Below are positions 8,336 through 54,949 of a stretch of 64,000 bases of DNA, in pieces. The position numbers were made by a program, and so were the translations under genes. Below the pieces are notes generated by a model. That model saw only the letters and a program-made list of their open reading frames with translations, had not been told where the DNA came from and made no database searches. Each line of letters starts with the position of its first letter. The first letter of the stretch is position 1. The stretch lies in sequence record NC_027364.1; one strand, 5' to 3'.

Positions 8336-8618
8336 AGTTCGGTGACCTCTAAAGTTGAGTTAATGTAACTAACATATAAAATATGAATGAAATATAATAT
8401 AGACTATATATTATCAGAATTATATAAAAAGTCAAGCCCCTATCACTCCTTTTTTCGAAGTCGCTAAGGTTACCCGCCCTTTAGCCCCCTACGCATTTTG
8501 CCATAGTCCAATCCCTTTTATTTCAAAAAAGTCAAGGGATTACCTATGCATTTTTTTAACGCATAATTTTAAAAACGCCTTGACTTTTTTCTGAATCAGT
8601 ACTAGATCCCTTTACGCA

Positions 8619-11600
8619 TTAATCCTTCGTTACGCTAACGATTATCTGTGTATCCCCGTAGTCCTGCCATACTTCCACGCCATCGGTCGCCCTGGTTAGT
8701 CGTGCTGTCATCTGCTTAATGGTCTTAGGCTTTAGTGGAACCTGTTGCAGTACTGTACGCATAGCATCATTGACGTTATCATGTACGCCTGCAATAGTAC
8801 CTAGAACGCTGTATACTGTATAGAACATATGTATGTACTCCTGATATAGTTAAGGCCGCTACAAGGCGGCCTATGATGTTTGGTGATGTGTAACGCTTAC
8901 AGTCCTAAGATAGTGCGTGCTTCGTTACGTTCCGTACACAGCTGCATGATGTGAGCAAGTAAGTCCTTGCTAATGTATCCGTTGTCCATAGCTTCACGGA
9001 TAGATACATCATAAGCACCGAACCCCGTGCGAACGATACGCACATCATTCAGGTTAGTATTATAGATACCGCCGAGATCAACGGCTTCGAATACTACATC
9101 AACAGAATATTCATTGTTGCCATCGTGGAAGTTTTCCAGTGCAATAGTATTGGATACCGCCCAACGTTTGCAGTTTCCAATGATGCGGCACTGTTCCGGT
9201 TGGATAGTGCCATTACTTACAGCGTACTCCAGTGCATCTTTACCGAAAGTCCGAGCCAGTACTAAAACGTCAGCGAAGGAATTGATTGAGAAGGTCATGA
9301 TAAAACTCCTTAATTTAGGAGGGAGAACCATTTCCCCCTCTCTATGTAAAACATTATACTTGATTCTAAGTACTATGCAAGTACTTTTTACATTTTAATT
9401 CCTGGATTCAGGTAACGGTGAGATCCATATTCTGGATAGGTTTCGTTCCAGTACTGTAAATCGATAGTACCTTTCGCGTTAATCTTGTCTACCAGCTTAT
9501 TCATCTTAGCGTATACTACGTCAGCATCGATGCGTTTAAAGCCAGTAGCTTTAGTGAAGTAGTAGTGATTTGCTTCACTATCATTAAGGATATACCGAGC
9601 ACCGTTTGCAGTCTGTGCGATAATGATTGAGTATTCTACTTCCCGATCCAGACCGTCGATGAATACAGATGAAACATTGGTACGGATGAAAGCTTTAACG
9701 ATAGCGATTGAAGTACTCATTTTGAATCTCCTAACTTTGTGGGCCGTCGCACCATTGCCGCCCTACGAGATACATTATTGCAGTACTGATATACTTTGTC
9801 AATACTTTTTTATTAATAGTTTTAGTTCCACCAGCAGATAGTTACTCACCGTTATTAACTATATATTTTGGATACACTTATGCACCCTGTGGGCTGATTT
9901 GTTTCTATGCGTATATAATAGCAAAGGGACTGACCGGAGTCAATCCCTTTTTTATTCTTTTTTGTTAGATGATTCTCCAATCATCAACGATCATGGTAAG
10001 ATACCGAACCAGTGATTCGAGTGATTCGTGTTCTCGATAGTCTGCCGCACCGCCAGCGGTACAAGTACAGCCGATTAAGCCGTTTTGCAATTCCTTAATC
10101 TGTACATCGATAAGGTTGGCTTTAGCTTCTTTCAGTACTTCAACCAGGGCGAGAGCGATAGACATAATGTTTTACTCCAAACTATTGGCGGGAGAACTAT
10201 TCCCCCGCTCTATGTAAAACATTATACATTACTGGTTAGTACTGTCAAATAGTTTTTATGAAATATCTTCGATGTAGTCGGCCCATTTCATTTTTTCAGT
10301 ACTGTCAATGGCTACCGGATTATTTGGATCAAACCATTCACCATTACCGCAATACATACCAACGGCTACGGTTTTATAGCCATCCTGGGCCGTACACCAC
10401 GACATTGCACGATAGATATGGCCTTTAACTGGTTGCAGTACTGGTAACGTTTTATGGTCTTCTACGTAGGCCATAGCTTGAGGATTTACCCGATATTGTG
10501 TGAATTGTTCCATTATGTTTCCCCTTGTAGTTAGTAAAGTTATTACATCAGTACTATCAAGCTATGTCAATAGTACTGAAATAAAACTTTTAGATTAGAT
10601 TATTGAGGCCGTCAATGGTAGACTCACTTTCTTCTTTCTCCCATTGTCGGTAGTACTTCCATGCTTCATGATAGGTGGCGATTAGTTCATCTTTTTGATC
10701 CTGGTTACATGCCAGTACTGAATCACGGTGAGCGGTGTTATAGATAGAATCGAATGATTTCTTCTCTTCTGCCAGGTTAGCTACTTCCCGCATCAGTTCA
10801 TCAAAGTTAGCCATTTTATTACTCCTTTTAGTGGGGGAGGATATCTCCCCCTATGCAAAACATTATACTTTGTTTTAGTTATTATGCAAGTACTTTTTTC
10901 ATATAAACATTAAATTCTACACCGCCGTAACCTTCCACGATGATATGTTTTGCGTTATCACGTTTGCACATAGTGAAACCATCGTTTACGTGTTTTGCAT
11001 TTTCCAGGGCGACATCACCGATAGCGGCACATACAGCACTAATAACGATATTCCGCAAAGTACTGGTATCATTAGCGGTCATAGTAGTTTGCATGATTAC
11101 GTTGTCGTATACGTGTGCATTGATAGTGATTTCGATAGTGTTCATGGTGTATCTCCTGGACTGGCGGGAGAACTATTCCCCCGCTCTATGTAAAACATTA
11201 TACGTTAATCTAACTACAATGCAAGTACTTTTTAAATTTTATTTCCGATATAGTCTGGCCTGTTCTTTTCGGTCATACGCTTAAGCATTTTTTGCATATG
11301 GCTTATTGCTTGTAGTGTATCCTCTTCCAGGGATGAATCGAGATAATCAGGATCATTCTTCACCTTGCAATGATTATGATAGCGTAGTACTGCCAGTACT
11401 TTTTTAACTTCTTCAACTGTCATAATAAGTACTCCACTTCGTTAGCTTTCAGGTTAGTATCAATCATCAATGGTTTTTTGTAGTTCACAAAACGATTAGT
11501 TTTTTCGATAGCGAATCCCATATAATCCAGCTTACTAACAGTACATTCATTCTTAAAAACTTCTTTCGCTGCATCGATGGCTGATTGCATGGATAACCGA

Positions 11601-14600
11601 CCATCTAAATTAATGTTTCCAAATGATCCACCAGCAGAAGTAGGATTACCGTTCATATCTTTAATGATCATAGTAGCGGAGTAGCTGGACATAATTTTGT
11701 TTCCTTTTAGTATCGGGGAGAACTATTCTCCCCTTGATGTAAACTATTATACAGTACTAATATACTTTGTCAATACTTAATTACGTTTAAAATGATATGT
11801 GCCTTTATCATCCTGTACGCCCCATACTGATTTACCATCAACACCAGTGAAGCCGGATTGTAATTCAATATGGAAACCATTATTATCAACTACAAAAACT
11901 TTTTTATTTTCATCCCGATAACATTGATATTCTGAATCAACATTAAAGGCCGCATCATTCAGAAGATTGGAAGCGTAAATGCAAGTCATTGTAGTCATGA
12001 TTTTATTCCTTATTGCCAGGGAGAACCGTTTCCCCCTCTCGATATAAAACATTATACTTGATTCTAAGTACAATGCAAGTACTTTTTTAAAATAGTTTTC
12101 AGTACTGAATACTTATATAATAGATACACTTCCGCACCCTATGGGTCAGTGAGTTATCTCTCAATGAATATATAATAGCAAAGGGACTGACCGGAGTCAA
12201 TCCCTTTTTTAATCTTTTTTATCGTGTTATAGTTACGGCTTTTACATCACGCTTTTTATAGTACTGATTCCAGATATTGCGGGTTAAACCGTAATCAAGT
12301 ACTTTAATAAGGCCGTTGCGATCCTGGCCGATATTCTGTTTTCTGATATCTCTTATCGTTAGTGTTGACAGTGTATCATCAACGTGTTGTAGTGCATCAG
12401 CAAAGCGGTGCTGGCGTTCAATAGCATTACGTTTAATATTGTACTTTAATTCGTTGCACGCGTTAACGTGCTTCACACTGCCTTTACTTGCAGTACTCAA
12501 CCGATCCATAACAATAAACATATTATCAGGATCGCTTAAATGCATATGCACTTTAGCGAAGAACTGTTTCAACTGAGGGCGGTCATAGTCTAAAAAATTC
12601 CATACCCTACATTCTGTTTCATTTTGTTCTACACCCGCATCACAATTCGCGACCTTGATCACTAACCGATCATTTAAAGCGAAAACTATACGGGAAGAAC
12701 CCGCACCGATGATCTCCAGACCAGCTAACCGACAAGCTGAAAGGATCTCTTTGTTGGTTTCCATTGCTGACAGGGTACGGATGAATTTAGTATAATTACG
12801 CATTGCATGTTCTCCTTGAGTTAATGAAACTATCTTACAGTACTTTACTATCAATGGCAACTACTTTTTTTACACTAACCGCGTGAATCACTTCCTTAGT
12901 GTTTTTAGTACTGAATACTTTCGCCGTGCCTTGTTCTACTGCAATACGATAACGACCGTTAACATCAACCATATTAATAAAGTCCGGTGTACTAAACCGA
13001 GTAGTTTTACATTTCAGTACTGTTAACAGTTCCACCAGCGATGTGGTTTCTTTGATACGTTTTTCTAAAGTAATCATTTTGTTTTCCCCGTGTTGGTATG
13101 TACATATAGTACTAAAACATTTGAGTACTGTCAACGTGATATTAGTTTTATTTTCTTATTATATTGTTGATGTTCATAAAGGTTTATCTTTCCTGTGTTC
13201 TCTATTACTATTCTGTTGTTAGTGTCTACATCGATTACACGCAGTTTTCCGTTGCTTAACTTCCTTGGTAATAGGTTACCATTAATAAACTCATTAGCAA
13301 GCTGTACGGCCTTTGTGATGATTCTCTGAGGTGCTTTATAGTGTACCCGCAAGATATTATCTTTAGATAGTTGTACCTTAATCATTTTAGTTTATCCTAT
13401 AAAAAAGGCGGGAACTGATCCCGCCGTGTTGTTAGTACTGCAAGTTATTAGATAACCTGTCGGCGTTTACTATATACTGTTACACGATTACCCTTACGGT
13501 CGTGTCGGATCTCTTTCTGGTTGCGTACCAGTTCACTTGGACGCTTCAGGTTTGCCAGGTGATCCGCGTGAGTCCAAGCGGTATGGTTTGTCTGTACTTT
13601 GATATCAGAATCAGCGATAAACTCATCTTGTGCATCAAGTATTGACGCCAGTAAATCCGCTCGTTTTAGTTCTGCTGCTGTTAGTACTGGCTCCGGTGAA
13701 TTCACAATATCAGAGATCTCTTTGAACTGTACGGCCCAGCGTTGACCTTTCGGTGCATCTTTGCCCATGTCTTTAAATGTTTCGCCTTCCTCGCGTGCAA
13801 CAATACGGGCAGCTTCACGGGTAGCGTAGAATTTAGTAATCATGGTATACATCCTATTAGTTGAGTTAGTACTACAAGTTAGAGTCTATTATAAAGTACT
13901 ATCTGGGCAATGTCAAATAGTACTTTAAATGGATTCTATTACATGTCTTTCTTACGTTTTACATCGTGGTAGCGAACTGTTATTTCTTTGTTGATCTCTT
14001 CCTCGATGCGGTGAATAACTGTTTCTTTCGGGTTGAAACCTATAACGGTTTCTTTAATGATCTCCAAGCCCGTGTATTCTCCTTGTGTACCGTAACCGTA
14101 AGTAAAGGTTTCATGTCCCAGGTCTTCCCAGCGGTCGCCAATTAACGCGGACACGTAGCAAGAGTGGTAAGTGTTACCGTTCCGATCAGTCCAGCGATTA
14201 ACTTTAATGTCAAAGGAGGTTACAATTTTCAGTTCTACTTTCTGGGTAAGGATCATAGCCATTTTTATTTCTCTCTCTCTTTGTTAGGAGGGGAACCGTT
14301 TCCCCTCGCTTGATGTAAACTATTATACAGTACTAAGATACTTTGTCAATACTTATTTTTTGGAAAGTTTACGCATTAATTCTACGCTTTCTTGTGAACG
14401 TTTTGCTACCTGGCAATCTGTATGGGTAGTAAACATTTTTGTATAGTCTGACGGTTTGCCACCGAACCGAGCGGCACGCTCACGGGCACTTGGAACTAAT
14501 ACGATTTCTTTCTTACAGATAGTGCACTTAGCCATTTTTATTTCTCTCTCTTTGTTAGGAGGGGAACCATTCCCCCCTTGATGTAAACTATTATACAGTA

Positions 14601-17600
14601 CTAAGATACTTTGTCAATACTTAATTATTGTAAATGCAGTGAATAGTGATAAAGTTTTTACGACCGTAAACCTGCAAATCAATATCAATGTAGTGCTTAT
14701 CAAGTACATCCTCGACGCTTAACGCGGTGTCGTGAATATCTTCGTAGAATTGAGGATCTACAATCTTGCTTAAGTCATCCGGCGTTAACTTATCGTTAAG
14801 CCATTGAACCGCCTGGATATCTGCTTCACGTTTCCAGTCTTCCAGGTTAGTAGTCAGTACTTGCTCGATTTCGTTAGCTGTCAGTAGAATCCGCATTTTT
14901 ATGTTTCCTTATCAGTAGTTGATGTAAGTATTATACTCGTTTACTTTCTATTGTCAATCTTTTTTTATCAGGGGAGTTTTTCGTATGTCTTACTCCTGGA
15001 CTACTTAACGGGGTTACTTGTTTTGTTCCCCGTCCTGATGTAAAACATTATACTTGATTCTAAGTACAATGCAAGTACTTTTTAAAAATAGTTTTACTTA
15101 CTCATATTAACAGGCTTGAACGGTGGCAATGTAAGATCATGCGGGGTTAAACTATCATGCTTTGCCCACATACCGGAATCCCTACGGAATAATACCTTAT
15201 TGTTTTTTATACGATAAAAGTTACCATTATCAGTGTTTTTGTACCATATCATTTTCATTTACTCCTGGTTATGTCGTTATTAAACATTATACGGGGTTAT
15301 AGATAGTTTTCAAGTATATTTCAGTACTAGCCACCAGCATATAATAGATACATTTATGCACCCTATGGGCTGATTTTTTTCTATGCGTATATAATAGCAA
15401 AGGGACTGACCGGAGTCAATCCCTTTTTTAATTCTTTTTAAACTTCTTTCGGGTTGCGATATGTGATAGCGTTCGGGTACATTTGTTTAATGTTATTCCA
15501 TGCCTGGTTAACATTGTAACCACTTGAGCGAATCAGTTGGTTACTACCGACACCTTGAAACACTACTTCGAATAAGAATTCTTTCATGCTTTCACCTCGC
15601 TATCTGCTTTACCTTTACGCCAGGACATTACTAATTGTTCGCGTTGCCATAAATCGAGTGATACAAAAAGTTTTGCGGTATCACTTTTAGGATACTCGCC
15701 AGTAGTACCTAACCGATAAAACAGATCTTTCAGTACTGATAATTCTACTTGAATCATTTTATTACTCCTGATTGATTTAATACTTCTACTATTGCATGAA
15801 TGATCATAAGTACAGCTAAAACAATAATCATCGGATTCATTTGCATAAGCTGTACTCCTTCTATTAATCTTTCAGCCAATGATCTTGAATGAATTTTTCA
15901 CAGAATCCCTGTTTCATGGATTCCAACAGGCGTTCGCGGTGAGCGTTTGCGAATTGCTCAGTACTATGCGTTACGCCAGGCTGATAACGTGATACCCCAT
16001 CCGGTCCGATGTATTGTACATCCCACGGTTTTTCGTTAGTATCAGACCATTTACGAACGATTAGTTGACCTTGCATTTTTCTTTCCTCTCAGTGGGGAGA
16101 ATCATTTCTCCCCTTCATGTAACTTATTATACAGTACTAGATTATCTTGTCAATAGTTTTTATTCACCTTGTTTGAATTTAGTTTTCTCCATTGATTCCA
16201 TGATTGCAACCAATACGCCGTGGATCTCGCTTAACGCGGAATCACTGAAAGCATTAATGAATAGTCGATCATTCTCGCGAATATTTTTAATGTACTTTTC
16301 AGCAGTAGTTGCGAATTCATTCAACGGTAGATCAAATGCTTTATCCCATGATGGATGGCGTAATTGTAACAGTACTGGATTATCACGATCACCAGGGGAA
16401 AACGTACCAGTGATGAAACATACGCCCGGAATACTTTCGAACTGGCAACGGACTTCCTTTGTGATAGTAGTATGAATGTACATTTATTGTTATCCTCTAT
16501 TAAATTAATATTACAGTTTATGAATCAATTCTTTATCTAAGCGATAGCGTACATTATTAATAGTAACGGCATTGTTTTTAATGCTACGCTGTACAGGTCC
16601 ACCAGCAATAACAAATGTTGCTTTATTACCCCGAACAATGATAGCACTTCCAGGATTACCGAAATCATCTTGTACTAAAATACTTGATAAGTTTTCCATT
16701 TTCATTTCCTCTTAGTAGGGGAAGATGTTTCCCCTTGATGTAAGTACTATAACACTACTGGATAGTACTGTCAATACTTTTTATCTCATAGATCTATGCC
16801 AACAATTACGCGGGGGACGTTTAAAAGTACTATCATGATCCTCCTGGCAAGTTATGCAGTACTTACATCCCTTAACGGCCTGGCGTCGTTTCTCAGGGAT
16901 TATATCGCCGCAGTCGAGGCAATGTATCAGTGATTCTATTTGTGCGTTAATTTGCTTTCTAGCGTGGTTAACGGCGGCCTGAATCACTGCGTTAATCTCG
17001 TCTTGTTCGGCCCCATCTTTCGCGAATCCTACAGCCATTATTTTAACCTCATTATAAAAATACTATAGTACTGTAATGCGACAATAATATTACTTGTTCT
17101 TACTTTTTCCAATCCACATGATACCACATATTCATCCCCATATGTGCGGAACGATACACCATGAAAATTTTTATACACTTGCACTACTAATCATAACCTT
17201 TCGTCTAACCAACTGCATAGAATTATACTACTTTACGCAAATTGATCAAGTATTGATCAGATCATTTTTTGATCAATATTATACAGTTACATTTGTGCAC
17301 CCTATGGGTTAGTGACGTTCTCGTCTTGATGTAAGTATTATGCCAGTACTTGATGATATTGTCAATAGTTTATTTTAATTTTTTTCTGTCATTGATTAAT
17401 GCTTTCAGTACTATACTAATGATTTGCAATGATTCATCAATGACTATAAAATTATTCTCTTTCATTAGATGATAGTTACCATTGATTGTATATTCTAAGG
17501 AGTACTGTTTACGTTTAATTTTTGATAATGTTTCTATTTGTTTTTGTACTGATTTCATGCTAATCATTGTTAAACGTCCTGTAACGCATTCTAACGAGAT

Positions 17601-20600: not shown

Positions 20601-23600
20601 CATCGATTAAAGTACTGATATTTTTCATTTTACTATCCTCTTAAGTTGATTTAATTTCTTTCCCCTATGCAGACACTGTATCAAAGTATCTGCATAAAGT
20701 AAAGCTAATTAAAGATCTTTTTTACGTTTTACATCCTGTACAGTACAATGCAACGGGATAGACAAATCATTACACAAACGAGTAAGGGAGGTTTCAACAG
20801 TATCAAGCCCGTCTACTGATTCCTTTAAGAGATCAAACGCCGTTTGTTGATATGCATCTTCATAGCCATAAGTAAATGATTCAACCGCCAGATCATTCAA
20901 ACCGTTATCCAGTTCAACGCTTACATGACAAGAATGATAAGTATTGCCATATGAATCAGTCCAACGTTTACCGTCAACATTGATTGCATGGATTGCAGCC
21001 AGGGAAACGGTATTGATGATAGTTTTAGCCATTTTAGTATTCCTTAAATTAATATGTGTCGTCTTGATAAAATCTATTATGCCAGTACTATCAAACTATG
21101 TCAATAGTACTGTGATAATATTTTTACTTACTTTCTTTCGCTGCTTTATATGTTGCCACTGCCATAACCACATCAGCACGAACAAAGTTTTTAACCGTGT
21201 CACTGTAATAATTGATCGCATCATCTATATCTGCGAACGTCCGATACATACCGCACCAAGATACTTTATAACCTTCTTTCACTTCTGCCAGTTTAACGAT
21301 AGTCTTGTTAACTTTGATTTTAGTAATGATAGCCATTTTAGTTTCCTCATTATCAGGGAGAACCATTTCTCCCCTTGATGTAATGTATTATACTTTATTC
21401 GATTTACTTTGCAAGTACTTTTTTTAATTTAATTCATCCAGGCAAAGGATACGCTCAACGCCCAAATCAGTTAAACTAATCGACGGCACTTGATAGGTTT
21501 CAATGTATGCTACACTTGCCCACTGACCGAACTCATTAACGGCCCAGGTATTCATTGCATTTTGCAATTCCGCACCTGCCTTGTTAGTAATGACTGCAAC
21601 TACTTGTTCGTTGCCAGTAGTACCAGATACGCGAGTAATGATAATAGCCATTGTTTTGATTCCTTTGATTTGGAAGGAGAACCGTTTCCCCCTCTCGATG
21701 TAAAACATTATACGCTAATCTCTTAATCGTGCAAGTACTTTTTATTACTTTTTGCAAAATACTTTAAACGCTCTCAATCGCATTCTAACGACCTTAACGC
21801 CACCAGCTAGGGCGATGTATCAGATAATCAGTTTAATGCGTTAGAATCGATTCTAGGCGGTGCTGGTGGACTGGAATACTACAGACACAAAAAAGCCCAC
21901 TGTTTAAGGTGGGCTAGTGATTCAGTACTTTAATTGTTATGCTTCAACTTTGCGATGAGCTTCGATCCATTCCTCGCGAGTCATACCGCTTTCTTTGATA
22001 GCGTCCAGTACTACCGCAATGCAGTTACCGCGTACAGGAATCATATGTTCTTCCCCGTTATCAAGTACTACAGTAACACGTTCTTGAATCCATTTTTTAG
22101 GTTTAGATTCTGGCTTATCTTCACCATACTTAACCGCCAGGGCTTTATGTGCCATTTCTACAACTACTTCCAGATCCAATCCAGCCACCGCCGCCTGGAT
22201 ACTTTCGATTGTTGCTTGCAGTTCGGCTTCACGGGCTTTTTTCTGTTCTTCCAGTTCTGCTACCTTTTTGGCTTGCAGTTCTTTAGCTTCACTGTACGCA
22301 ATGTTAAAATTGTTGCGTACTGCTTTCATGGTATCGTTATCCAGGTCAGCCAACAATTCAGCAGCAATAACAGTATCGTTTGAAATCAGTGCTTTCAGGA
22401 ATGATTTTACATTAGCCATTTTATAAATCCTCAATTAAAGTTTAGTTTACGTTTATTAGTGTATCAAAGTTTTATCGACGTGTCCAGTTTTTCGTTCGAC
22501 TTACTGGCGGTCTACTTAGTGCTCCCCGTCTTGATGTAATACATTCTACGCCTTTTTGTGGTAATGTCAACTACTATTTTAAAACTATTTTTAAAGTATG
22601 CAGTACTACGATAATACAAAAACAAAAAAGCCCACTGTTTAAGGTGGGCTAGTGATTCAGTACTATATTATAAACAGTTAATTACTCCGGTGTGCGTTAC
22701 TTTCTCAGTATCCATAACCGTGACCGATCCACGCTTAGTACTTACATCGTAATAAATTGTCGTGCTACCTTTTTCGTCTTCTTCATGGAACGGGCCGCTT
22801 TTAAATGCTTCTGGCTGGATCTCTAAATCCTTTAAAACAATCTCGCCAGTACTTTCATCTGTCATCGCAACAGTGCACTGAATGAATTTTTCACTACTTA
22901 CATCTAACGACGCATTAACAGCGAAAGAGGAAACAGATAAAGCCAGGGCGATGATTGCAATTTTCATTTGATTATCCTTAGTTACCAGGGGGAACCGCTC
23001 CCCCGTGCGATGTAAAATATTGTACAGTACTAAAAACTAATTGCAAGTACTTTATGATTTTTTATAAAACATTTCGGCAGTAATATTTTTACCCGTTGGT
23101 TGTACTTTATCCAGAATTTTTTGATGCCCTGGCCGTCCAAATGAATATGATCCGTAAACCGTAAACCAGTAGTTACCCTCAGTGTTTACATGTACAGCAC
23201 AATAGGGAACGCCCCGCGATTCATCACCAATAAAGTGTGATACCGTTCCCGTTACATTAGCAGACGTTGATTTGATTTGTTCAAGCATTTTCTTATTCCT
23301 TAGTTACCAGGGGGAACCGCTCCCCCTATGCAAAACATTATACGCGTTTAAAAACTAATAGCAAGTATTTTAATAAAAAGTATTTGAAAAATAATTGTTG
23401 ACAACTGCATCCAGTACTGGCATAATTACTACATCAAGACGAAACAGTCACTAACCCACCGGGTGCCGAGATCCGTCTATTAAATGATTCAGTACTTAAC
23501 AATAAAGGGGATCAATCGATCCCCTATGTATTACTTAGTAAGGTATAAACAGAAGTCACCTTTATTTGCTACGCCGCCAGTGTAACGCGATGAATAGTTA

Positions 23601-26600
23601 GAAACGTCCTGGACTTCTGCTATTACCAGTGTATCATCATTCAATTCGTCGCAGAAGCAAACGGCTGGATCTTTTACGCCGATCTTGTCGGCATGTTCCC
23701 GCATAGATTTAACCAGTGCTTCCAGTTGAGAAAGAGTAGTGATATTAGCCATTGTATTTTCCTCATTACCAGGGAGAACCATTTCTCCCCTCTATGTAAA
23801 CTATTATACAGTACTGAAAACTAATTGCAAGTACTTTTAATTAAATTCCATAAAATCATTCTCAACGTGCACAACAATTTGATTGTTTTTAAAGTCCGCA
23901 GCGAACTCGATGCAATCATAAACCGCTTTTTGTGTTACAATGCTATGAGTACCAATCGGATTAATAGGGGATTGAATTGTTTCAATCTCGTTCCCTTGCT
24001 CATTAACAATTAAAATATTAAACATCGCTGTTACTCCTGGGTAGTGTTAACTCGATATAAAGTATTATACGCCTTTATTGCTTAGTGTCCAGTACTTTTT
24101 AAAACATATTCATAAACACTACGCACATCATTGATCATCGCCTGGCGGTTAGCAGGTAACGCACCAGGATCGCCACTATCCCAGGCATTGATAAAACTCC
24201 CCAAATCATGAAAGATTTTATTCTGTAAGCCGATTAACTGCAATTCTTTTTCTTCAAGCTCTTTGATACGGTCAATTAAAAGACTCATTAGATAATCCTC
24301 AGTACTTAATTGTAAGATCCGCAACGGTTACAATAGTGCCCGTCTTCCTCGTCATCGTCAACGAATTGACCGACGAAATTATCTACTTTCTCTTTGAGAT
24401 TCTGATAATTGTTTTCAACTTCCTTTAGACGTTCCTGGTAGTATTCCAGGGCTTGCACATACGCCGCCTCAGCCGTTTTCGCTCTTAAGGCTAAATTCAT
24501 GCCACGCGTTTCATCGTACATCCAAAAGCCATCGGTGCACTCACTGATTGACAATGATTTGGTTAACACTTTATAGTCAATTACTTTGCTCATTAGATAA
24601 TCCTCAGTAAAGGCGGGAACCACACCCGCCATTGATTCAGTACTGAATGTTACATTCCAACCATTGCAGCACGGATCGCCGTAGTGCTATACTTGAATCC
24701 GTCCGGTGTTGTAGTAGTACCGTTGGCTTTTAATCTGCGGTACATACATTGGGCCGCAATATCTTTAGTTTTACATTGTGCGATGCAACTTTGAGCAAGC
24801 CGATATAATGACTCACCGTTATTAATCCACAATGAAACATTCCAATGAGTTTTGTTTTTGTGCCCGTTGTAAGTTTTAGTAGTAGCCATTTTTAAATCCT
24901 CGTTTAATTGAGCGGGAGAACCATTCCCCCGCCTCGATATAAAGTATTATACGCTTTTAAACTTAGTTTGCAAGTACTTTTTAAATTAATATGCGATTGA
25001 TTCTACTACGTCATCAATAACATTGAATTGATACTCGTTACCCTCGATCAGTGCCGTGATGTTCTCAGTAGTGAATTGATCCTCATATGCATTCTCTAAA
25101 TCACGGTACAACTTGCGGGACAATTCACGAATAGTATCAGTGAGTAGTTCCTCAAGCTCATTAACTAACGTTTCTTGTTTTGCGGTTAAATCAGTGTAAG
25201 CCGATTCAATGTACCCGCTTACAGTATTCTCATGCGAGTAGTGGGAGTGCGAACGCTTTACACTCATCGCCAAATCATCTTCATTCAGCAAGTGACGGAT
25301 TGAGCGATACTTAGTTAATGCTCTTACCTTGCGTAAAAACTTCACTGCGTCAACGTGGTCAGTACTGATTGATGCACCGTCACCCTGGGACCAAAAACCA
25401 CTGAATTGTATTTCAGCTTCATTAATGCCATATTCCGGTAGTACTGTTTCTTTATAGTATTCAATTTCACTTTCAGAAAAATAATTGTCGTTTGAGTTTT
25501 TTTCACGTTCCCGAACCAGTTCGATAGCTGACGTTTGTTGTTCTGCGTTCAATTCAGAAAAATCCATAACGAAAGTAGTAGTAGTGATAGTTTTCATTTT
25601 GTAACCCTCATTCAGTAGTTGATGTAAGTATTATACGCTTTTAAAAACATTTGTCAAACTATTTTATCAGGGGAGTTTTTCGTGTGCCTTACTCCTGGGC
25701 TACTTAACGGGAAGTTACTTATTTCGTTCCCCGTCCTGATGTAAAACATTATACGCCTTTAAACATAGTTTGCAAGTACTTTTTAAAAATAGTTTTCAGT
25801 ACTGAATATTAAAAAAGTATTGACAGCATTATCAAGTACTGGCATAATATACCACATGACAACAGCTAACCCACCGGGTGCACAATTGTAACTATACTAA
25901 ACTAATTTTTCTATAGATACACTCCCGCACCCTATGGGCTACGGCTTATCTGCCAATGAATACATTATGCCAGTACTGACAAAATAAGTCAATACCGGCA
26001 ATTGTAAAGATTTGTAAACTACTTATACTGCAATCGCGTCCAGGCTATAATAATAATAAGTGCCGTATTGGTGTACTTTATTACCTTTTATTTCAGTACT
26101 GAATGAATCCGAACGATTTGCATATGATGTTAATTTAAAGTACTTTGATTTGCTGATACGTTGCCATACACCACAGATCCGCTGTAAGTAAGTAGTTTTA
26201 TTCGTGGTAGTATCTTTTACGGTTTTAACTTCAGTCATATACATATTAGTCATTTTTATTACTCCAGGTTATAGGCGGGAAGAGTTCCCGCTCTCGATGT
26301 AAAACATTATACGCCTTTAAACATAGTTTGCAAGTACTTTTTATTCAAGTACTGCAATCTTTTTAGTACGGTACACGGTCACGCGGTTGCCCTTTCGGTC
26401 GAGCTTTATTTCTACCACTCGACGCGATACACTATCGGGACTTTTTAAGGCCGCTAACCAGTACTGTAATGATCTGGCTGTACTACGCTTTACAATGGCC
26501 CAACGTTTACCACGTTCCGATTGTACGCCCATATCTTTAAACGTTGCCCCGTCCTGGCGTGCGGCGATCCGAGCTTGTTCACGCGTCGCAAAATACTTAA

Positions 26601-27710
26601 TATTCATGCTGTTGCCCTTATCGTTGGTGTATGAATAAAACACTATTATAAAGTACTATCGCAAAAAATGATAGTACTTTAAATAAATTCTATTCTATTA
26701 CATTCCAACCATCGCCGCACGGATCGCAGTAGTGCTATACTTAAAGCCGTCCGGTGTTTTATCTTGTCCAGTCTGTTCTAAAAATAGCATCATATGACGG
26801 GCCGCATCATTACGATTAGTATTGGCGGCAATAAAGTCCTGGGCCAACCGATACAATCCCTCATCGTTATTAATCCAAAGGCTTACATTCCAATGAGTTT
26901 TGTTTTTGTGACCTAAGAACATTTTTGATTTAGCCATTTTTTTAATCCTCTTATATAGTGGGGAACTATTCCCCACCTGATGTAAAGTATTATACGCTTT
27001 TAAATTTAGTTTGCAAGTACTATTTTTTCAGTACTGGTAAACCTTTGATCTCACCTGGCTGTACTTCCTCAAAGGCGACCGCCATCATACGGCTATCATC
27101 TTCCTTACATTCTTCCATCGCATCACAAAAATGATTAATAACGTCCGGTGCAACGTCAACCACATCAAACAAGCCAACCTCAGTGCAACGGCTTAAAGCG
27201 TTTAATAGGTCAGTCAGTGCAACGGATTGAGAAACAGTTAAAATAGTACTCATACAATTAATCTCTTAATTATAGTGGGGAACTATTCCCCACCTGATGT
27301 AAAACATTATACGCTTTTAAACTTAGTTTGCAAGTACTTTATTAAACTTATTTGTAAATTTTGCCACTGTCAGCCCATACCAGGAAACGAGGCATATTAT
27401 CCCATGCATCTTGTTTTAAATTTAAACCGTGCAATTCCTCAGTAGTTGCCATCCCTGGTACTGGCTTACTACACACCGCGAAATTTTCGCCCATATACTG
27501 ATAAACCATCGTCAAATCATTTGAGATCATCTTATGGATCATCGCATCAAGCATCACGGTAGCGGCGTATTGTTCACGCTTAAGCGGCAGCATTTTAATC
27601 AGTTCGCGGTATGCGTCAATGTGAGTTTTAACCGTTGCCGCCGGAAGATCTTTCATCTCGTCGCGGAAGTTAACCAGGTTAGCAATAATTTTGGTGATTT
27701 GAGTTGCCAT
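8619..27710 (-). CDS. Cluster of about 60 small, mostly monocistronic early hypothetical genes
   Basis: ORF track plus extra short ORFs (e.g. 15094..15258, MKMIWYKNTD..., 54 aa). Most follow a promoter/hairpin/RBS cassette. True starts are often downstream of the track start (9298, 11998, 19426, 21336, 21651, 23752, 24288, 24593, 26607, 26937, 27710). Confidence 0.8.
12219..12803 (-). CDS. Protein-kinase-like protein (minimal ePK/APH-like fold)
   Basis: Gly loop IGAGSSRIVF, VIKVA lysine, QNETE glutamate, DIRKQNIG catalytic loop, VLDYG; AAGGAG RBS supports the start at 12803. Confidence 0.75.
   Translation of the reverse strand: MRNYTKFIRTLSAMETNKEILSACRLAGLEIIGAGSSRIVFALNDRLVIKVANCDAGVEQNETECRVWNFLDYDRPQLKQFFAKVHMHLSDPDNMFIVMDRLSTASKGSVKHVNACNELKYNIKRNAIERQHRFADALQHVDDTLSTLTIRDIRKQNIGQDRNGLIKVLDYGLTRNIWNQYYKKRDVKAVTITR
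13448..13852 (-). CDS. Hypothetical protein, paralogue of 26341..26607
   Basis: Both share (F/Y)ATRExAR..FKDMG..GxRWA and C-terminal DRKGNRVTVY. Confidence 0.75.
   Translation of the reverse strand: MYTMITKFYATREAARIVAREEGETFKDMGKDAPKGQRWAVQFKEISDIVNSPEPVLTAAELKRADLLASILDAQDEFIADSDIKVQTNHTAWTHADHLANLKRPSELVRNQKEIRHDRKGNRVTVYSKRRQVI
13939..14262 (-). CDS. Hypothetical protein, paralogue of 20709..21032
   Basis: Both share RWTDxxGNTYHSC, FTYGY and C-terminal DVKRKKD(M/L). Confidence 0.75.
   Translation of the reverse strand: MAMILTQKVELKIVTSFDIKVNRWTDRNGNTYHSCYVSALIGDRWEDLGHETFTYGYGTQGEYTGLEIIKETVIGFNPKETVIHRIEEEINKEITVRYHDVKRKKDM
14967..15039 (-). ncRNA. Candidate structured leader/small RNA, copy 1
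   Basis: Directly after a TTGCAT-16-TATAAT promoter, no ORF. Outer stem ATCAGG/CCTGAT, hairpin ACGGGG/CCCCGT, linker TAAGTAG, hairpin GGAGT/ACTCC. Confidence 0.55.
16781..17038 (-). CDS. TraR/DksA C4-type zinc finger protein (YbiI-like)
   Basis: MAVGFAKDGAEQDEIN... and CLDCGDIIPEKRRQAVKGCKYCITCQE match the family pattern. Confidence 0.9.
   Translation of the reverse strand: MAVGFAKDGAEQDEINAVIQAAVNHARKQINAQIESLIHCLDCGDIIPEKRRQAVKGCKYCITCQEDHDSTFKRPPRNCWHRSMR
20709..21032 (-). CDS. Hypothetical protein, paralogue of 13939..14262
   Basis: RWTDSYGNTYHSC, FTYGY, DVKRKKDL. Confidence 0.75.
   Translation of the reverse strand: MAKTIINTVSLAAIHAINVDGKRWTDSYGNTYHSCHVSVELDNGLNDLAVESFTYGYEDAYQQTAFDLLKESVDGLDTVETSLTRLCNDLSIPLHCTVQDVKRKKDL
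21937..22419 (-). CDS. H-NS/StpA-like nucleoid-associated protein
   Basis: N-terminal coiled coil (AKELQAKKVAELEEQKKAREAELQ), charged linker, C-terminal VVLDNGEEHMIPVRGNCIAVVLDAIKESGMTREEWI resembling H-NS [36 protein letters not shown]. Confidence 0.55.
   Translation of the reverse strand: MANVKSFLKALISNDTVIAAELLADLDNDTMKAVRNNFNIAYSEAKELQAKKVAELEEQKKAREAELQATIESIQAAVAGLDLEVVVEMAHKALAVKYGEDKPESKPKKWIQERVTVVLDNGEEHMIPVRGNCIAVVLDAIKESGMTREEWIEAHRKVEA
22474..22535 (-). ncRNA. Candidate structured leader RNA, copy 3 (5' UTR of the H-NS-like gene)
   Basis: Keeps GACGGGGA, TAAGTAG and GTAAG..ACGAAAAAC; the stem is CCAGT/ACTGG instead of GGAGT/ACTCC. Confidence 0.5.
22668..22967 (-). CDS. Small exported protein (signal peptide, Cys near both ends of the mature chain)
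   Basis: MKIAIIALALSVSSFAVNA signal; QC...NCL. Confidence 0.7.
   Translation of the reverse strand: MKIAIIALALSVSSFAVNASLDVSSEKFIQCTVAMTDESTGEIVLKDLEIQPEAFKSGPFHEEDEKGSTTIYYDVSTKRGSVTVMDTEKVTHTGVINCL
24650..24889 (-). CDS. Hypothetical protein, near-identical paralogue of 26698..26937
   Basis: GHKNKTHWNVSLWINN and TPDGFKYSTTAIRAAMVGM are identical in both. Confidence 0.8.
   Translation of the reverse strand: MATTKTYNGHKNKTHWNVSLWINNGESLYRLAQSCIAQCKTKDIAAQCMYRRLKANGTTTTPDGFKYSTTAIRAAMVGM
24986..25597 (-). CDS. Acidic hypothetical protein with an FSGFWSQGDGAS motif
   Basis: 203 aa, many E/D residues; own promoter-hairpin absent but a sigma70 promoter lies directly upstream. Function not assigned. 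Confidence 0.6.
   Translation of the reverse strand: MKTITTTTFVMDFSELNAEQQTSAIELVREREKNSNDNYFSESEIEYYKETVLPEYGINEAEIQFSGFWSQGDGASISTDHVDAVKFLRKVRALTKYRSIRHLLNEDDLAMSVKRSHSHYSHENTVSGYIESAYTDLTAKQETLVNELEELLTDTIRELSRKLYRDLENAYEDQFTTENITALIEGNEYQFNVIDDVVESIAY
25666..25740 (-). ncRNA. Candidate structured leader/small RNA, copy 2
   Basis: Same architecture as 14967-15039; substitutions fall mainly in loops and stems are retained. Confidence 0.55.
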
Positions 27711-27824
27711 CGTTTTAATCTCTCTTAAAGTGTAGCGGGAACACTTCCCGCTCTCGATGTAAAACATTATACGCTTTTATCAGTACGGTGCAAGTACTTT
27801 CTACAAATACTTTTAAAATAGTTT

Positions 27825-27917
27825 TCTTTCTATATAGGAGTACTATTATTCAGTACTGAATCAATCCAGGGGAACTATCTTTCTATATAGGAGTACTATT
27901 ATTCAGTACTGAATCAA
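27825..27917. repeat. Two 40-bp direct repeats separated by 13 bp
   Basis: TCTTTCTATATAGGAGTACTATTATTCAGTACTGAATCAA at 27825-27864 and 27878-27917; each holds two AGTACT. Confidence 0.9.
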
Positions 27918-28535
27918 CCAAATCACTACTACACCCCATAAAACGGCCTCAGACGCATTCTAACGCATTAATACACCTAAGCTATACATTTGCACCACTC
28001 CCAACAATCCAGGGCGTTACGGGCCGTTTAAACGCGTTAAATTATTTTCAATTATTTTGTTTTTAGGTATTGACTTGATCCTGAAAAAGCGTATAATTAC
28101 TACATAGACGCGAGAAAGCGGAAACCCCAGAGGGTGCGGAATTACGCCCAAAATTCAAGATATAAAAAAAGGATACACTCCCGCACCCTAGCAGGTAAAC
28201 GCACTTTCTCAGTACTGAATTATAGTACCATAGTCCGGCCCAGGATGGCAAGCAAATTAATTAAAACTTTTTTCATCCAGGGTATTGCTTTATTTTTCCA
28301 GTACTGTATAATAGTTCCATCAAGTCGAGAAAGACTCAAGCCCACCGGGTGCATAGTTACGCCCAAAATTCAGTACTGAAAAAATTTTTAAAAATATCCG
28401 TCCAGGCCGTTGACATTGCCCCCAGTTTATAAGATAATGATTCCAGATTCAGAAAAATCTAACTCCAGATACTGCGGGGAAACTATCCCCACGCGGTAGG
28501 GGAACTATTGGAAAAAACAAAATAAAATTTTGATT

Positions 28536-28647
28536 TAGCCGTCTATACTTCCAGACGTGTAACCATCTAGCCGTTTAGCCGTCCAAACGTCTAGCCATCC
28601 AGCCATCCAGAAATCTAGCCGTTTAGCCGTCTAGATGGATAGCCATC
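28536..28647. repeat. Eight copies of the octamer (T/C)AGCC(G/A)T(C/T) in an ORF-free region
   Basis: Copies at 28536, 28568, 28576, 28592, 28600, 28616, 28624, 28640. Confidence 0.9.
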
Positions 28648-29705
28648 TTTACTTCCAGACTTCTGGAGGGCTAGACATATCTACGTCCAAAATCCACCCA
28701 GGGTAACTACGCCCAAAATCCGTCAGTACTATACCATAGATCTATCTTTTGAAAGGGAGTATTCAGTACTGCCACAATAGCCCTCACTATGTTACCCTAG
28801 GAGGATGAAGACTATCATGTAGTACTGAATACTGTTAGAGGGAATCCACCAGCTTGTGCTGGTGGCATAATGCTTTAGATTAAAATCAGTACTGACACCA
28901 TTCTGTTAATATCAGTACTGTTATTACGATTTTCATATGAGGTTCAAAAAGATGTACCACCACAGGAGGAACTATCTTTTCTGTACTGTCTCACGACAGG
29001 AGGTAGAGTAAATGAATTGTTCGCAGCAACTCATCACCCTATGTAGAACATTATACAGTACTGAATCATAATGTCAATAGCTTTCTTTCATTATTCAGTA
29101 CTGATATTCTTGAGAACTACCCGACTACAAACATCATTATATCCCACAAATCATAAACGTCCCAACGTAAATTTCAACTTTCGAAGATCCAACTTTTATT
29201 TCATAGGTACTCCAAAATTTTTAGGATCGAGATTTAGGATGGAGTACTAACCAACTTTTTGCTGGAGCCTCAAGGGGTAATGGAATTTTACCCCGAAGGG
29301 TAAAGGGGTAATTGAAATTAAGGTGAAAGTAATAATTCAGTACTAATCATTGCGTGATTACTTTTGATTACATTTGATGTAATTTGAAAAATGGAAAAGG
29401 AGCTTGGAAACTACAAAGTACGGCAGACTTCCTCTGCCTACTTAGTGGCATATCAGTACTGAATCCTTCCCGTGCATTCTTGAGCATTCTTGTCTATACT
29501 AATCAGTACTGAATCATATATAATCATTCTGTGATTCTACGGTGCTCATATAAATGTTTATATATGATTACTTATGACTACCTATGATTACGGGGTTTAG
29601 CCTGGGGAGAATCCTAGTGATCGCATTTGTCCAGGCTGAATTTTAACAATTCGCCTGTACATAAAGGTTGTTCACTAGGAGCTTCCCCTGTCTACTTGTG
29701 TTTAA

Positions 29706-53674: not shown

Positions 53675-54940
53675 TTATTTCAAAGAATCATAGTAAGCAG
53701 TGTCAAAGATTGGAGTCATAATAACATAGTCAATACGGTCAATGTAAGTTGAACTCCACATTTCTGGTTTGTCATATAACTGACGCTCGCGTTCATTCAT
53801 ACGAGTCAGTACTTCTTCCAATTTACTACGTGAATCCATCAATGTATTACTCGAACCATAAGTGAAGTACTCAGTCCAATGATATTCATATTCAGTACTG
53901 ATAGATTGAATAGTACCATCTTTGAAATGAGCTAAGGCATAACCTTTCTCTACAAAGTTATCAGGTGGAAGAACACCATCTGGATTAGTTTTCAATGCTT
54001 GTGCTAACTTTTCTTTAATTTCAGTTAACGTGCATACTGAACGAATGTTCTTCAGGTTTGATACTTGAAAATCACTGTACTTTCCAAAGAAAAATACACG
54101 CCAATCTTTAGGTTCATTATCAGATACGGTAGCATCAGGGTGATGGGCGAGTAAACGAAGAAGGCCAGCTTTGTGACCGTTAATGTAGATTTCATGGATG
54201 TGGTTAGCAGTTTTCTTAAAAGTAATCATGGTAGTTCCTCGATTGTAGGGATGAGAAGTTCATCCCCTTGATAAGCATTATACAGTACTGAATGTGTTTG
54301 TCAACTCAAAATAAATTCATTTCATGTGCGTATTGTGGTTCAAGATAAGATAAGTTTTTGAAACTGTCTTTCAATTCTGCATCATCTACGTACACAGTAC
54401 CAGGTACATTCCCCATAGTGAAGCCAACCCAAACAGTCATGTTTCCAGTTCCTAAGCGGGGCATTGATAGCGTCCCGTCAGGTGAAACATCAAACGCTAC
54501 ACTAAAGTCATCCGTTACAACTTCCGAACCATTTTCCAGAATAATACAACCACGTTCTTTAAGCTTCTGAATGTGGATAGCAGCCTCTACAGCACGTTTA
54601 AAGTTATAATAAGACTCTTTATCCTCGAACATTGATTGTTTAACCAGACGCTTGTTTAGCTCGGTTACTTTGTGCATTTGACGCATTACTTCAACTCCCA
54701 CAGTTGTAGAATTTCATAAGAGCCTGGTGGTGCTGGATTGATAATCTCAGGGTATTCAGTACTGTTAGGATTACCACCAGCATTGAACTCAGCAAGTAAT
54801 AATTCGAGTTCATTCCTATCATGTACAACAAACACGCAATATCCAGTTCCTTCTTCAAGAACTGTAGTTGACCCCGCACAATCCCATACGGTATCAATAC
54901 ATAATAATTCTTTAGTGTTTTTATTACGCAACGCAAACAT
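53675..54940 (-). CDS. Three hypothetical proteins (53675..54229, 54306..54701, 54686..54940)
   Basis: Consecutive ORFs on the coding strand; no motif recognised. Confidence 0.6.
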
Positions 54941-54949
54941 ATATGTCTC

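Follow-up and report, generated by a model that had tools for sequence, protein, structure and literature searches.

Chi sites cluster in the predicted terminal repeat of jumbo phage PBECO4 and may let RecBCD spare the genome ends

Introduction

The ends of linear phage DNA are substrates of RecBCD, and a number of protein-based strategies against this enzyme have been described, including lambda Gam, T7 gp5.9, P22 Abc and the T4 gp2 end protector. Chi sites also have a place at phage ends, as their clustering there is already known from P1 and from LLS-type lambdoid phages. For P1, clustered Chi sites are proposed to let RecBCD and RecA recombine the terminal repeats after injection. The rule "no Rec module, abundant Chi" has been put forward for the LLS-class lambdoid phages (Genome Res 2025, PMC12315714). 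The Chi sites of this class cluster terminally and are strongly biased in orientation (20 of 23 in LLS), and growth is aided by RecBCD (PMC12315714). For the Asteriusvirus genus, or jumbo phages in general, a search of the available literature found no earlier report of a Chi cluster. Long direct terminal repeats (DTRs) have, in turn, been mapped in several relatives of the jumbo phage PBECO4: fEgEco12 (20,993 bp, PhageTerm and restriction digests), vB_Ec-M-J (21,525 bp, record annotation and PhageTerm), Sharanji (20,668 bp, PhageTerm), G17 (~20 kb, coverage) and CBB (22,456 bp, read depth and PFGE). Here, we describe a cluster of Chi sites in PBECO4, its orientation, the match of the surrounding block to homologues of mapped termini, and the conservation of the cluster across genera.

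Results

The Chi-rich block aligns with the mapped termini of related phages

The window analyzed is a 64,000-nt stretch of NC_027364.1, Escherichia phage PBECO4, corresponding to record positions 124,001–188,000. The PBECO4 record (348,113 bp) is a collapsed assembly in which the repeat block is deposited once, in the middle. When aligned, position 1 of fEgEco12 falls on window position 29442 and its last base on window position 8467. The terminal 60 nt on either side are nearly identical among PBECO4, fEgEco12 and vB_Ec-M-J. By homology, the block is predicted to be one assembled copy of an exact direct terminal repeat of ~21 kb that would be found at both virion ends:

8467–29442, minus strand: direct terminal repeat, single collapsed copy, 20,976 bp, placed by alignment to the relatives' mapped termini

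Relative to the window, the virion DNA reads as the reverse complement, with the left terminus at 29442 and the right terminus at 8467. A preliminary description of this DNA had proposed a DTR with ends near 8.5 and 29.2 kb, a proposal that the homology to mapped termini supports and refines to 8467 and 29442. With respect to termini elsewhere or circular permutation, the fixed, mapped ends of the relatives align to the block edges, which suggests that the ends of PBECO4 are likewise fixed there. Because the ~21-kb repeat was assembled once, the true genome would measure ~369 kb and not 348 kb.

Taken at face value, the deposited record, with the block present once and in the middle, would make this a unique internal early region in which Chi sites guard against internal breaks, such as those made by restriction enzymes. 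This reading is very improbable. The sequences at the block boundaries, when compared, match the mapped termini of the close relatives fEgEco12 and vB_Ec-M-J, a kinase-like marker gene of the repeat is present twice in 10 related records, and collapsed and full records differ in size by ~21 kb. In Logan contigs of relatives, depth is also roughly doubled on the repeat side, 1.7–2.7x higher (X7, 405 versus 241; X10, 179 versus 81 and 67), although contig depth is a poor measure of copy number.

Chi is concentrated in the repeat block

The exact Chi octamer, GCTGGTGG, occurs 11 times in the window, against 0.50 expected from the mean of 100 shuffles; the maximum among the shuffles was 3, and 0 of 100 reached 11. 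In agreement with the preliminary description, which had reported at least 10 Chi sites in ~19 kb, 10 were counted at 9828–28865, and a recount of the window's other ~44 kb again gave one (54774, minus strand). The density is far from uniform genome-wide. Of the 22 Chi sites in the whole PBECO4 record, the 20,976-bp block holds 10 (0.48 per kb) and the remaining 327 kb hold 12 (0.037 per kb), a 13-fold difference in density (binomial P = 2e-7 for 10 of 22 sites inside 6% of the genome).

Such a cluster might be a by-product of the GC content, strand skew or codon use of the block, or of DNA acquired from the host. The block does have a higher GC content than the remaining genome (38.4% versus 33.8%) and a G-rich sense strand. 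Moreover, the 12 Chi sites outside the block look codon-driven, and look-alike words are about as frequent there (GGTGCTGG, 17; GGTGGTGC, 11). Inside the PBECO4 block, however, 168 same-letter permutations of Chi average 0.36 occurrences on both strands, close to the ~0.2 first estimated, and the next best reaches 4, versus 10 for Chi. Across all tested blocks, the permutations average 0.23–0.39 per block and Chi occurs 9–14 times, ranking 1 of 168 in each. On this test, an artefact of composition or codons was rejected. Based on the minimum observed/expected ratio over five repeat blocks, Chi is the second of all octamers, the first being the phages' own CAGTACTG. Also at odds with a by-product, 7 of the 10 sites lie outside coding sequence, a number from the preliminary description that the PBECO4 annotation reproduces, in a block that is itself 39% non-coding.

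Minus- and plus-strand sites face opposite ends

RecBCD must reach Chi from its 3' side (PMC12315714). Based on this orientation rule, the sites of the block are arranged as follows:

9828–9835, minus strand: Chi, faces the 8467 end and is the first met from it (1,361 bp in); non-coding, with a −35 box ~26 nt downstream
11628–11635, minus strand: Chi, faces the 8467 end; within the gp239 coding sequence
13032–13039, minus strand: Chi, faces the 8467 end; within the gp242 coding sequence
15331–15338, minus strand: Chi, faces the 8467 end; non-coding, with a −35 box 17 nt downstream
16599–16606, minus strand: Chi, faces the 8467 end; within the gp252 coding sequence
17644–17651, minus strand: Chi, faces the 8467 end; non-coding, 3' arm of a terminator-like hairpin
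21800–21807, minus strand, and 21862–21869, plus strand: inverted Chi pair, 54 nt apart; intergenic, gp266/gp267
28846–28865, no single strand: palindromic double Chi, CCACCAGC-TTGT-GCTGGTGG

With the ends placed by homology, eight minus-strand sites would be correctly oriented for RecBCD entry at 8467 (1.4, 3.2, 4.6, 6.9, 8.1, 9.2, 13.3 and 20.4 kb in) and two plus-strand sites for entry at 29442 (0.58 and 7.6 kb in). The guard is thereby strongly asymmetric (8 versus 2), and the assignment made in the preliminary description, of minus-strand sites to the end near 8.5 kb and plus-strand sites to that near 29.2 kb, appears to be correct. Both inverted pairs noted there, the perfect one separated by TTGT at 28846–28865 and that at 21800/21862, agree with the sequence. 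In the palindrome, an enzyme coming from the virion left end first meets the plus-strand Chi (28858–28865), after 577 bp, and one entering at the opposite, 8467, end meets the minus-strand Chi (28846) last. The plus-strand Chi at 21862 is the second and last to face the 29442 end, 7.57 kb in.

The hairpin at Chi 17644 has a folding energy of −9.2 kcal/mol (z = −4.4), and a Chi-bearing hairpin in fENko-Kae01 keeps its stem by means of a compensatory change. A general role of Chi sites as terminator stems was considered and rejected: only the site at 17644 and the palindrome form stems, and the palindrome has no T-run.

The cluster is conserved across genera

The inverted pair at 21800/21862 is kept in fEgEco12 (6619/6681) and vB_Ec-M-J (7402/7464). 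The Chi palindrome is found 0.48–0.59 kb from the left terminus in these two phages and in the distant fENko-Kae01, with a variable 4-nt loop (ACAA, TTGT or TTAA). The pattern of the cluster as a whole, with 7–12 Chi sites one way and 1–2 the other, recurs in six relatives. Two of these are Asteriusvirus members (fEgEco12 and vB_Ec-M-J), and vB_PcaM_CBB, Xanthomonas phage XbC2, fENko-Kae01 and RaK2 represent three other lineages. Counts in the repeats are given as top/bottom strand in virion orientation:

fEgEco12: Chi 10/2; 0 in the 6.7 kb of flank examined
vB_Ec-M-J: Chi 9/2; 0 in 28.5 kb of flank
CBB: Chi 7/2; 3 in 27.5 kb of flank
fENko-Kae01: Chi 12/2; 2 in 30 kb of flank
XbC2: Chi 7/2; 3 in 27.4 kb of flank
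RaK2: Chi 8/1; 1 in 27.6 kb of flank

Xanthomonas, on which XbC2 was isolated, was considered as a host whose Chi might differ and which could provide a natural control. Although no Chi sequence is established for this host, the phage has the enteric octamer, which makes it uninformative as a control and counts against the RecBCD reading.

Across lineages, the Chi positions are non-homologous and share no flanking motif, and DNA similarity between genera is confined to short promoter and terminator modules. The contexts of the sites vary and include coding sequence, promoter spacers (four in fENko-Kae01), the terminator hairpin and plain intergenic DNA. Membership of Chi in a longer repeated element was likewise rejected, as an alignment of 60+ site contexts contained no conserved flank. 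Among the three Asteriusvirus phages, the Chi letters show 0/160 mismatches and the ±25-nt flanks 67/1000, and the octamer itself is, on this comparison, apparently kept under selection in the repeat. Octamers that are kept as their flanks drift, in clusters at non-homologous positions in four genera, make the by-product explanation raised above extremely unlikely.

It could also be argued that the octamer is a signal for a phage protein acting in packaging, at a replication origin or in transcription control, and that its match to host Chi is a coincidence. A second conserved family of words in the repeats, AGTACT/CAGTACTG, does belong to the phages themselves, and in two lineages the distance between the palindrome and the left terminus is fixed, as might be expected of a protein-binding site. 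However, the exact enteric Chi word is present in four genera, mostly at non-homologous positions, in any context and with flanks that are not conserved, and its strand bias is set by the DNA ends. We consider a phage-protein signal improbable. The exact word, its varied positions and contexts and its strand bias relative to the ends are a better fit to a signal that a translocating enzyme reads than to a positioned operator.

The repeat block is an early-gene module

The block carries ~50 small, spaced minus-strand genes, and 11 perfect TTGACA-16/17-TATAAT promoters are found on its gene strand. It is an early module for host RNA polymerase. The same layout of small spaced genes, host-type promoters and raised GC content is seen in vB_Ec-M-J, CBB and fENko-Kae01. 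At the left terminus, the genes give way to a distinct region:

28380–29442, no strand assigned: gene-free left-terminal region of the repeat; contains the Chi palindrome and many TCAGTACTGA motifs

Within this region, 8-bp tandem units are arrayed at 28540–28660, and the first 1.7 kb of fEgEco12 and vB_Ec-M-J are likewise without CDS. A search of the repeat block against Rfam gave no structured-RNA match at the gathering score. In a Pfam search of 20 larger ORFs of the repeat, no known RecBCD inhibitor, whether Gam-like or another anti-RecBCD protein, was found. According to its annotation, PBECO4 encodes an SSB, the mediator UvsY, a UvsX-like protein named "recombination and repair protein", and a pair formed by an AAA ATPase and a metallophosphoesterase (Mre11/Rad50-like).

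Discussion

The Chi-rich repeat of PBECO4 probably lets RecBCD spare the phage ends and recombine the repeats. RecBCD entering an end would meet Chi and change from degradation to RecA loading while still within the repeat. The resulting 3' tail could then pair with the second copy of the repeat, either in cis or on a sister molecule. This would spare the ends and favour circularisation, the formation of concatemers or replication primed by recombination. We infer from this scheme that end protection and RecA loading for repeat-to-repeat recombination may both proceed through RecBCD, and that a reduced capture of CRISPR spacers from the phage ends would be a side effect. RecBCD recognises ~30% of Chi sites per site. 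As only two sites face the left end, protection there would be expected in no more than about half of cases at this recognition, which counts against the end-protection reading. End-protecting proteins carried in the virion, or small inhibitors encoded outside the repeat, might also shield the ends.

Alternatively, the chief benefit of the cluster could lie in that side effect, namely in limiting CRISPR spacer acquisition or another defence that depends on RecBCD degradation, and not in repeat recombination. The RecBCD–Chi interaction and the logic of orientation would be identical, and sites 0.6 and 1.4 kb from the ends would cut short the degraded tract that feeds adaptation, an effect that Chi reportedly has. 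One or two sites per end would suffice for this purpose, whereas 8–12 are spread across the whole repeat and stop just inside its inner boundary; such a distribution is therefore a better fit to a RecA-loaded tail that stays within DNA having a homologous partner. In addition, CRISPR adaptation is silent in many enteric hosts. We regard the defence-limiting explanation as unlikely, if less so than a phage-protein signal, and retain repeat recombination through RecBCD as the preferred reading. The view of Chi as "self-signal mimicry", put forward in the preliminary description, is contested (bioRxiv 10.1101/2021.07.08.451572).

More tentatively, all Rak2-like jumbo phages might possess such a "Chi-armoured" repeat, with a bidirectional palindrome ~0.5 kb in from the left terminus and, facing the right one, a ladder of 7–12 Chi sites. 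In this speculative extension, these phages would depend early on RecBCD and RecA for end joining or replication priming despite having UvsX, and the length of the repeat and the spacing of its sites would be tuned to the ~30% recognition. The arrangement in PBECO4 offers a testable hypothesis for how a linear genome of ~370 kb survives and begins replication in a RecBCD-proficient cell. A Chi ladder combined with conserved end motifs may also be used to locate the physical ends in Rak2-like records that are collapsed or arbitrarily opened.

These findings extend the idea that phages exploit Chi, described for temperate P1 and for lambdoid phages deficient in recombination, to jumbo phages that are virulent and have recombinases of their own. 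Like PBECO4, P1 and its relatives (P7 and D6) carry many Chi sites where the packaged ends fall, oriented toward those ends. P1, however, is temperate and packaged by the headful from a pac site, with a variable redundancy of 5–10 kb, whereas PBECO4 is a virulent jumbo myovirus whose repeats, as mapped in relatives, are exact and ~21 kb long. The termini of these relatives are fixed, as seen with PhageTerm and restriction digests, and their end sequences are conserved, a pattern that differs from pac-type variable ends. PBECO4 further differs from P1 in that UvsX-type recombination genes are annotated in its genome and a palindromic double Chi lies beside one terminus.

With the LLS-class phages, in some of which Chi is the top-ranking octamer (PMC12315714), PBECO4 shares a terminal, orientation-biased cluster. 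Those phages have cos ends, neither a terminal repeat nor recombination genes, and a single guarded end; in PBECO4, the cluster would lie at both ends by virtue of the repeat. Because UvsX, UvsY, SSB and Mre11/Rad50-like proteins of its own are annotated, PBECO4 falls outside the "no Rec module, many Chi" rule and contradicts it in its simple form. T5, like the PBECO4 block, places its earliest genes, transcribed by the host polymerase, in a long exact direct terminal repeat, the first-step-transfer DNA. As a negative control, T5 has no Chi cluster; its 10-kb repeat holds 2 of the 6 sites counted in 111.6 kb, and long repeats in general therefore do not hoard Chi. Finally, Gam, gp5.9, Abc and gp2 are proteins that block or shield RecBCD, whereas the signal in PBECO4 is carried by the DNA and would redirect RecBCD before any phage gene is expressed.

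Identification of the terminal repeat

Window 9000-30000 is 100% identical (megablast) to Escherichia phage PBECO4 (NC_027364 / KC295538), a Rak2-like jumbo myovirus of the genus Asteriusvirus with a 348,113-bp record, position 124,001 of which is window position 1. From homology to the mapped termini of relatives, window 8467-29442 (20,976 bp) is concluded to be the collapsed terminal repeat of PBECO4; the preliminary description had proposed a direct terminal repeat here, and its ends fall at the predicted places. Terminal repeats have been reported for fEgEco12 (20,993 bp, PhageTerm, confirmed with restriction digests; PMC13070987), Sharanji (20,668 bp, PhageTerm; PMC11895373), G17 (about 20 kb, coverage; PMC6563267) and CBB, a phage of another genus (22,456 bp, read depth and PFGE; PMC5259590), and a 21,525-bp repeat is annotated in the vB_Ec-M-J record. 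When both ends of fEgEco12 are aligned to the window, they match in reverse orientation, with the start of that genome at window 29442 and its final base at 8467. The outermost 60 nt on each side of the block are almost identical in the termini of PBECO4, fEgEco12 and vB_Ec-M-J. The right-end motif (GGACTATG ... TAAAGG ... CT; window 8467-8530) is conserved in Asteriusvirus and recognisable also in CBB, fENko-Kae01 and XbC2, and the XbC2 repeat was placed at 1 to about 17,581 by end motifs. Among the end regions compared (window 8467-8530, window 29380-29442, and the ends of the relatives' sequences L011, L012 and L016, the last being XbC2), a left-terminal start is common to CBB and XbC2. With the conserved end motifs, Rak2-like records deposited in collapsed form can be opened anew where the genomes truly end.

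The block has a GC content of 38.4%, versus 33.8% elsewhere, and carries about 50 small minus-strand genes set apart from one another, together with 11 perfect TTGACA-16/17-TATAAT promoters; elsewhere in the genome the genes are tightly packed. A kinase-like gene (window 12219-12860) is duplicated in ten related records, with one gene per repeat copy. In Logan contigs of relatives over window 26500-32400, the repeat side is 1.7-2.7 times deeper, which is suggestive only. The relatives' records form two size groups: collapsed ones of about 345-358 kb, and ones of about 366-384 kb that hold both copies; the newer records of close relatives are ~21 kb longer than that of PBECO4, which itself shows no repeat. 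The deposited record lacks one repeat copy and has an arbitrary start point; the packaged genome should be ~369 kb (about 369,089 bp).

Chi density and orientation

The host RecBCD octamer Chi (5'-GCTGGTGG-3') occurs 11 times in the window, whereas its mean count in dinucleotide-preserving shuffles is 0.50 and its highest 3.

Chi sites in the window
9828, 11628, 13032, 15331, 16599, 17644, 21800, 28846, 54774: window minus strand
21862, 28858: window plus strand

The cluster noted in the preliminary description is borne out by the octamer count, with 10 of the 11 sites inside the block and 54774 the sole outsider. That description was also right about the palindrome CCACCAGC-TTGT-GCTGGTGG at 28846-28865 and about the inverted pair at 21800/21862, and the record annotation gives the same figure of seven non-coding sites in ten, non-coding DNA making up 39% of the block. 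The outside site (54774-54781, minus strand) lies within overlapping minus-strand ORFs (54686-54940 and 54691-54993) and looks like an ordinary coding occurrence. In the whole PBECO4 record, reassembled from its parts, Chi is present 22 times; the block accounts for 10 of these and the other 327 kb for 12. Density is thus not similar across the genome: the block is 13-fold denser (binomial P = 2e-7) and the rest is Chi-poor, its 12 sites being no commoner than codon-driven look-alikes (GGTGCTGG, n = 17; GGTGGTGC, n = 11). Inside the block, the 10 Chi sites compare with a mean of 0.36 over 168 letter permutations and with 4 for the next-best permutation.

RecBCD answers Chi solely on arrival from the 3' side of 5'-GCTGGTGG-3' (PMC12315714). 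The virion orientation is the window's reverse complement, which puts the eight window-minus sites of the block on the top strand, where they face the right end (window 8467) at distances of 1.36, 3.16, 4.57, 6.86, 8.13, 9.18, 13.3 and 20.4 kb. Facing the left end (window 29442) are the two window-plus sites, 0.58 and 7.57 kb from it. The earlier orientation model, in which minus copies face the 8467 end and plus copies the 29442 end, fits this arrangement, with a marked 8:2 split.

The palindromic double Chi

Because it is palindromic, the double Chi reads as Chi from both directions; an enzyme starting at the left end meets it before any other Chi, and one from the right end meets it as the final Chi before the repeat exit. 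It is predicted to fold into an 8-bp stem. Its distance from the left terminus is 577-599 bp in the three Asteriusvirus phages and 484-503 bp in fENko-Kae01; the arms are kept and the loop varies (ACAA, TTGT, TTAA). On the virion strand, the 4-nt loop (window 28854-28857; L001:586-589 and L010:596-599 in relatives' sequences) is ACAA in PBECO4 and vB_Ec-M-J and TTGT in fEgEco12. These are mutual reverse complements, as if the loop had been flipped by recombination within the palindrome. The left-terminal 1.06 kb of the repeat is gene-free and also contains, about 0.8 kb inward of the terminus, an array of about 15 degenerate 8-bp units in tandem (CGTCTAGC / CATCCAGC type; window 28540-28660), to which a protein might bind in packaging or in recognising the end.

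Conservation and recurrence of Chi in relatives

All ten block sites are intact in fEgEco12 and vB_Ec-M-J, with 0/160 mismatches versus 67/1000 in the +/-25-nt flanks. An extra fEgEco12 Chi is GCTGGCGG in PBECO4, and therefore Chi sites turn over. Comparison of site contexts found no flanking motif common to the sites, which lie in coding sequence, plain intergenic DNA and a terminator-like hairpin (window 17644); in fENko-Kae01, four Chi fall within the free spacer that separates a -35 from a -10 box. The repeats of other lineages have only short promoter/terminator modules in common with PBECO4, yet the Chi pattern recurs.

Chi sites in the repeats of relatives (top/bottom strand) and in flanking DNA
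fEgEco12, mapped repeat: 10/2; flank, 0 in 6.7 kb
vB_Ec-M-J, annotated repeat: 9/2; flank, 0 in 28.5 kb
CBB, mapped repeat: 7/2; flank, 3 in 27.5 kb
fENko-Kae01, mapped repeat: 12/2; flank, 2 in 30 kb
XbC2, inferred 17.6-kb block: 7/2; flank, 3 in 27.4 kb
RaK2, inferred ~20-kb block: 8/1; flank, 1 in 27.6 kb

Chi is the top-ranking of 168 same-letter permutations in each of the six blocks compared, RaK2 being outside this test. In a ranking of all octamers by lowest observed/expected ratio over five blocks from four genera, Chi is second to CAGTACTG, and the remaining top words all belong to the AGTACT/promoter family. The enteric octamer in XbC2 (L016, 1-17581), a Mimasvirus reported from Xanthomonas vesicatoria, does not fit neatly, given isolation on a host without an established Chi sequence; either Xanthomonas RecBCD reads this octamer or the usual XbC2 host is an enterobacterium.

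Other features of the repeat

No octamer is more consistently over-represented than the palindrome CAGTACTG across the repeat blocks of all four genera, which hold 13-63 copies each; the PBECO4 record has 191, including 31 in the repeat. The 348-kb record has 891 copies of AGTACT (e.g. window 28370-29462), versus about 120 expected on a rough estimate from base composition. This over-representation comes partly from the early-promoter upstream word AAAAAGTACTTGCA/TTGACA, beyond which free-standing TCAGTACTGA palindromes remain. Three identical 28-nt minus-strand hairpins (window 9923-9950, 12180-12207 and 15399-15426; variant at 19019-19046) have a 12-bp stem, AAAGGGATTGACT CCGG TCAGTCCCTTT, with a TTGACT -35 box in the stem followed by TATTAT, and look like a terminator and promoter fused in a single module. 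Two products of the repeat are probably early host-takeover factors: that of the weak protein-kinase-like ORF at window 12219-12860 (minus strand), which is retained in the repeat by 54 Rak2-like records of different genera, and a protein with a DksA/TraR C4 zinc finger at window 16781-17038 (minus strand; Pfam E = 1.6e-10).

Proposed role of the cluster

Linear DNA ends are substrates of RecBCD, which Chi in the correct orientation switches from nuclease to RecA loader. A RecBCD/RecA function of the cluster is plausible in this phage group. Because all outward-facing Chi sites lie within the repeat, degradation would stop inside duplicated sequence, and therefore no unique DNA would be lost. 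The RecA-coated 3' tail would find the other repeat copy as its homologous partner, and this pairing would favour circularisation, concatemer formation or recombination-primed replication. The shorter degraded tract may also restrict CRISPR spacer capture. RecBCD recognises Chi at about 30% per site, at which rate eight sites would give >90% capture and two about 50%; the 8:2 asymmetry between the ends does not fit neatly with the proposed role.

Comparison with known systems

Terminal, oriented Chi clusters have been described in P1 and its relatives (bioRxiv 10.1101/2021.07.08.451572) and in LLS-class lambdoid phages (PMC12315714). PBECO4 does not follow the 'no Rec module, many Chi' rule put forward for the lambdoid group (PMC12315714), in that it encodes, by annotation, UvsX/UvsY/SSB-type recombination proteins. 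T5 has a long exact repeat like that of PBECO4 but is without a Chi cluster (6 Chi in 111.6 kb, 2 in the repeat), so terminal repeats do not in general carry such a cluster. No earlier report of a Chi cluster in Asteriusvirus, Rak2-like or jumbo phages was found in the literature searched. Relative to P1 and the LLS class, the PBECO4 cluster is distinctive in its exact 21-kb repeats, the coverage of both ends via inverted Chi pairs, the conserved palindromic Chi close to one terminus, and its occurrence in a virulent jumbo phage with its own recombinases.
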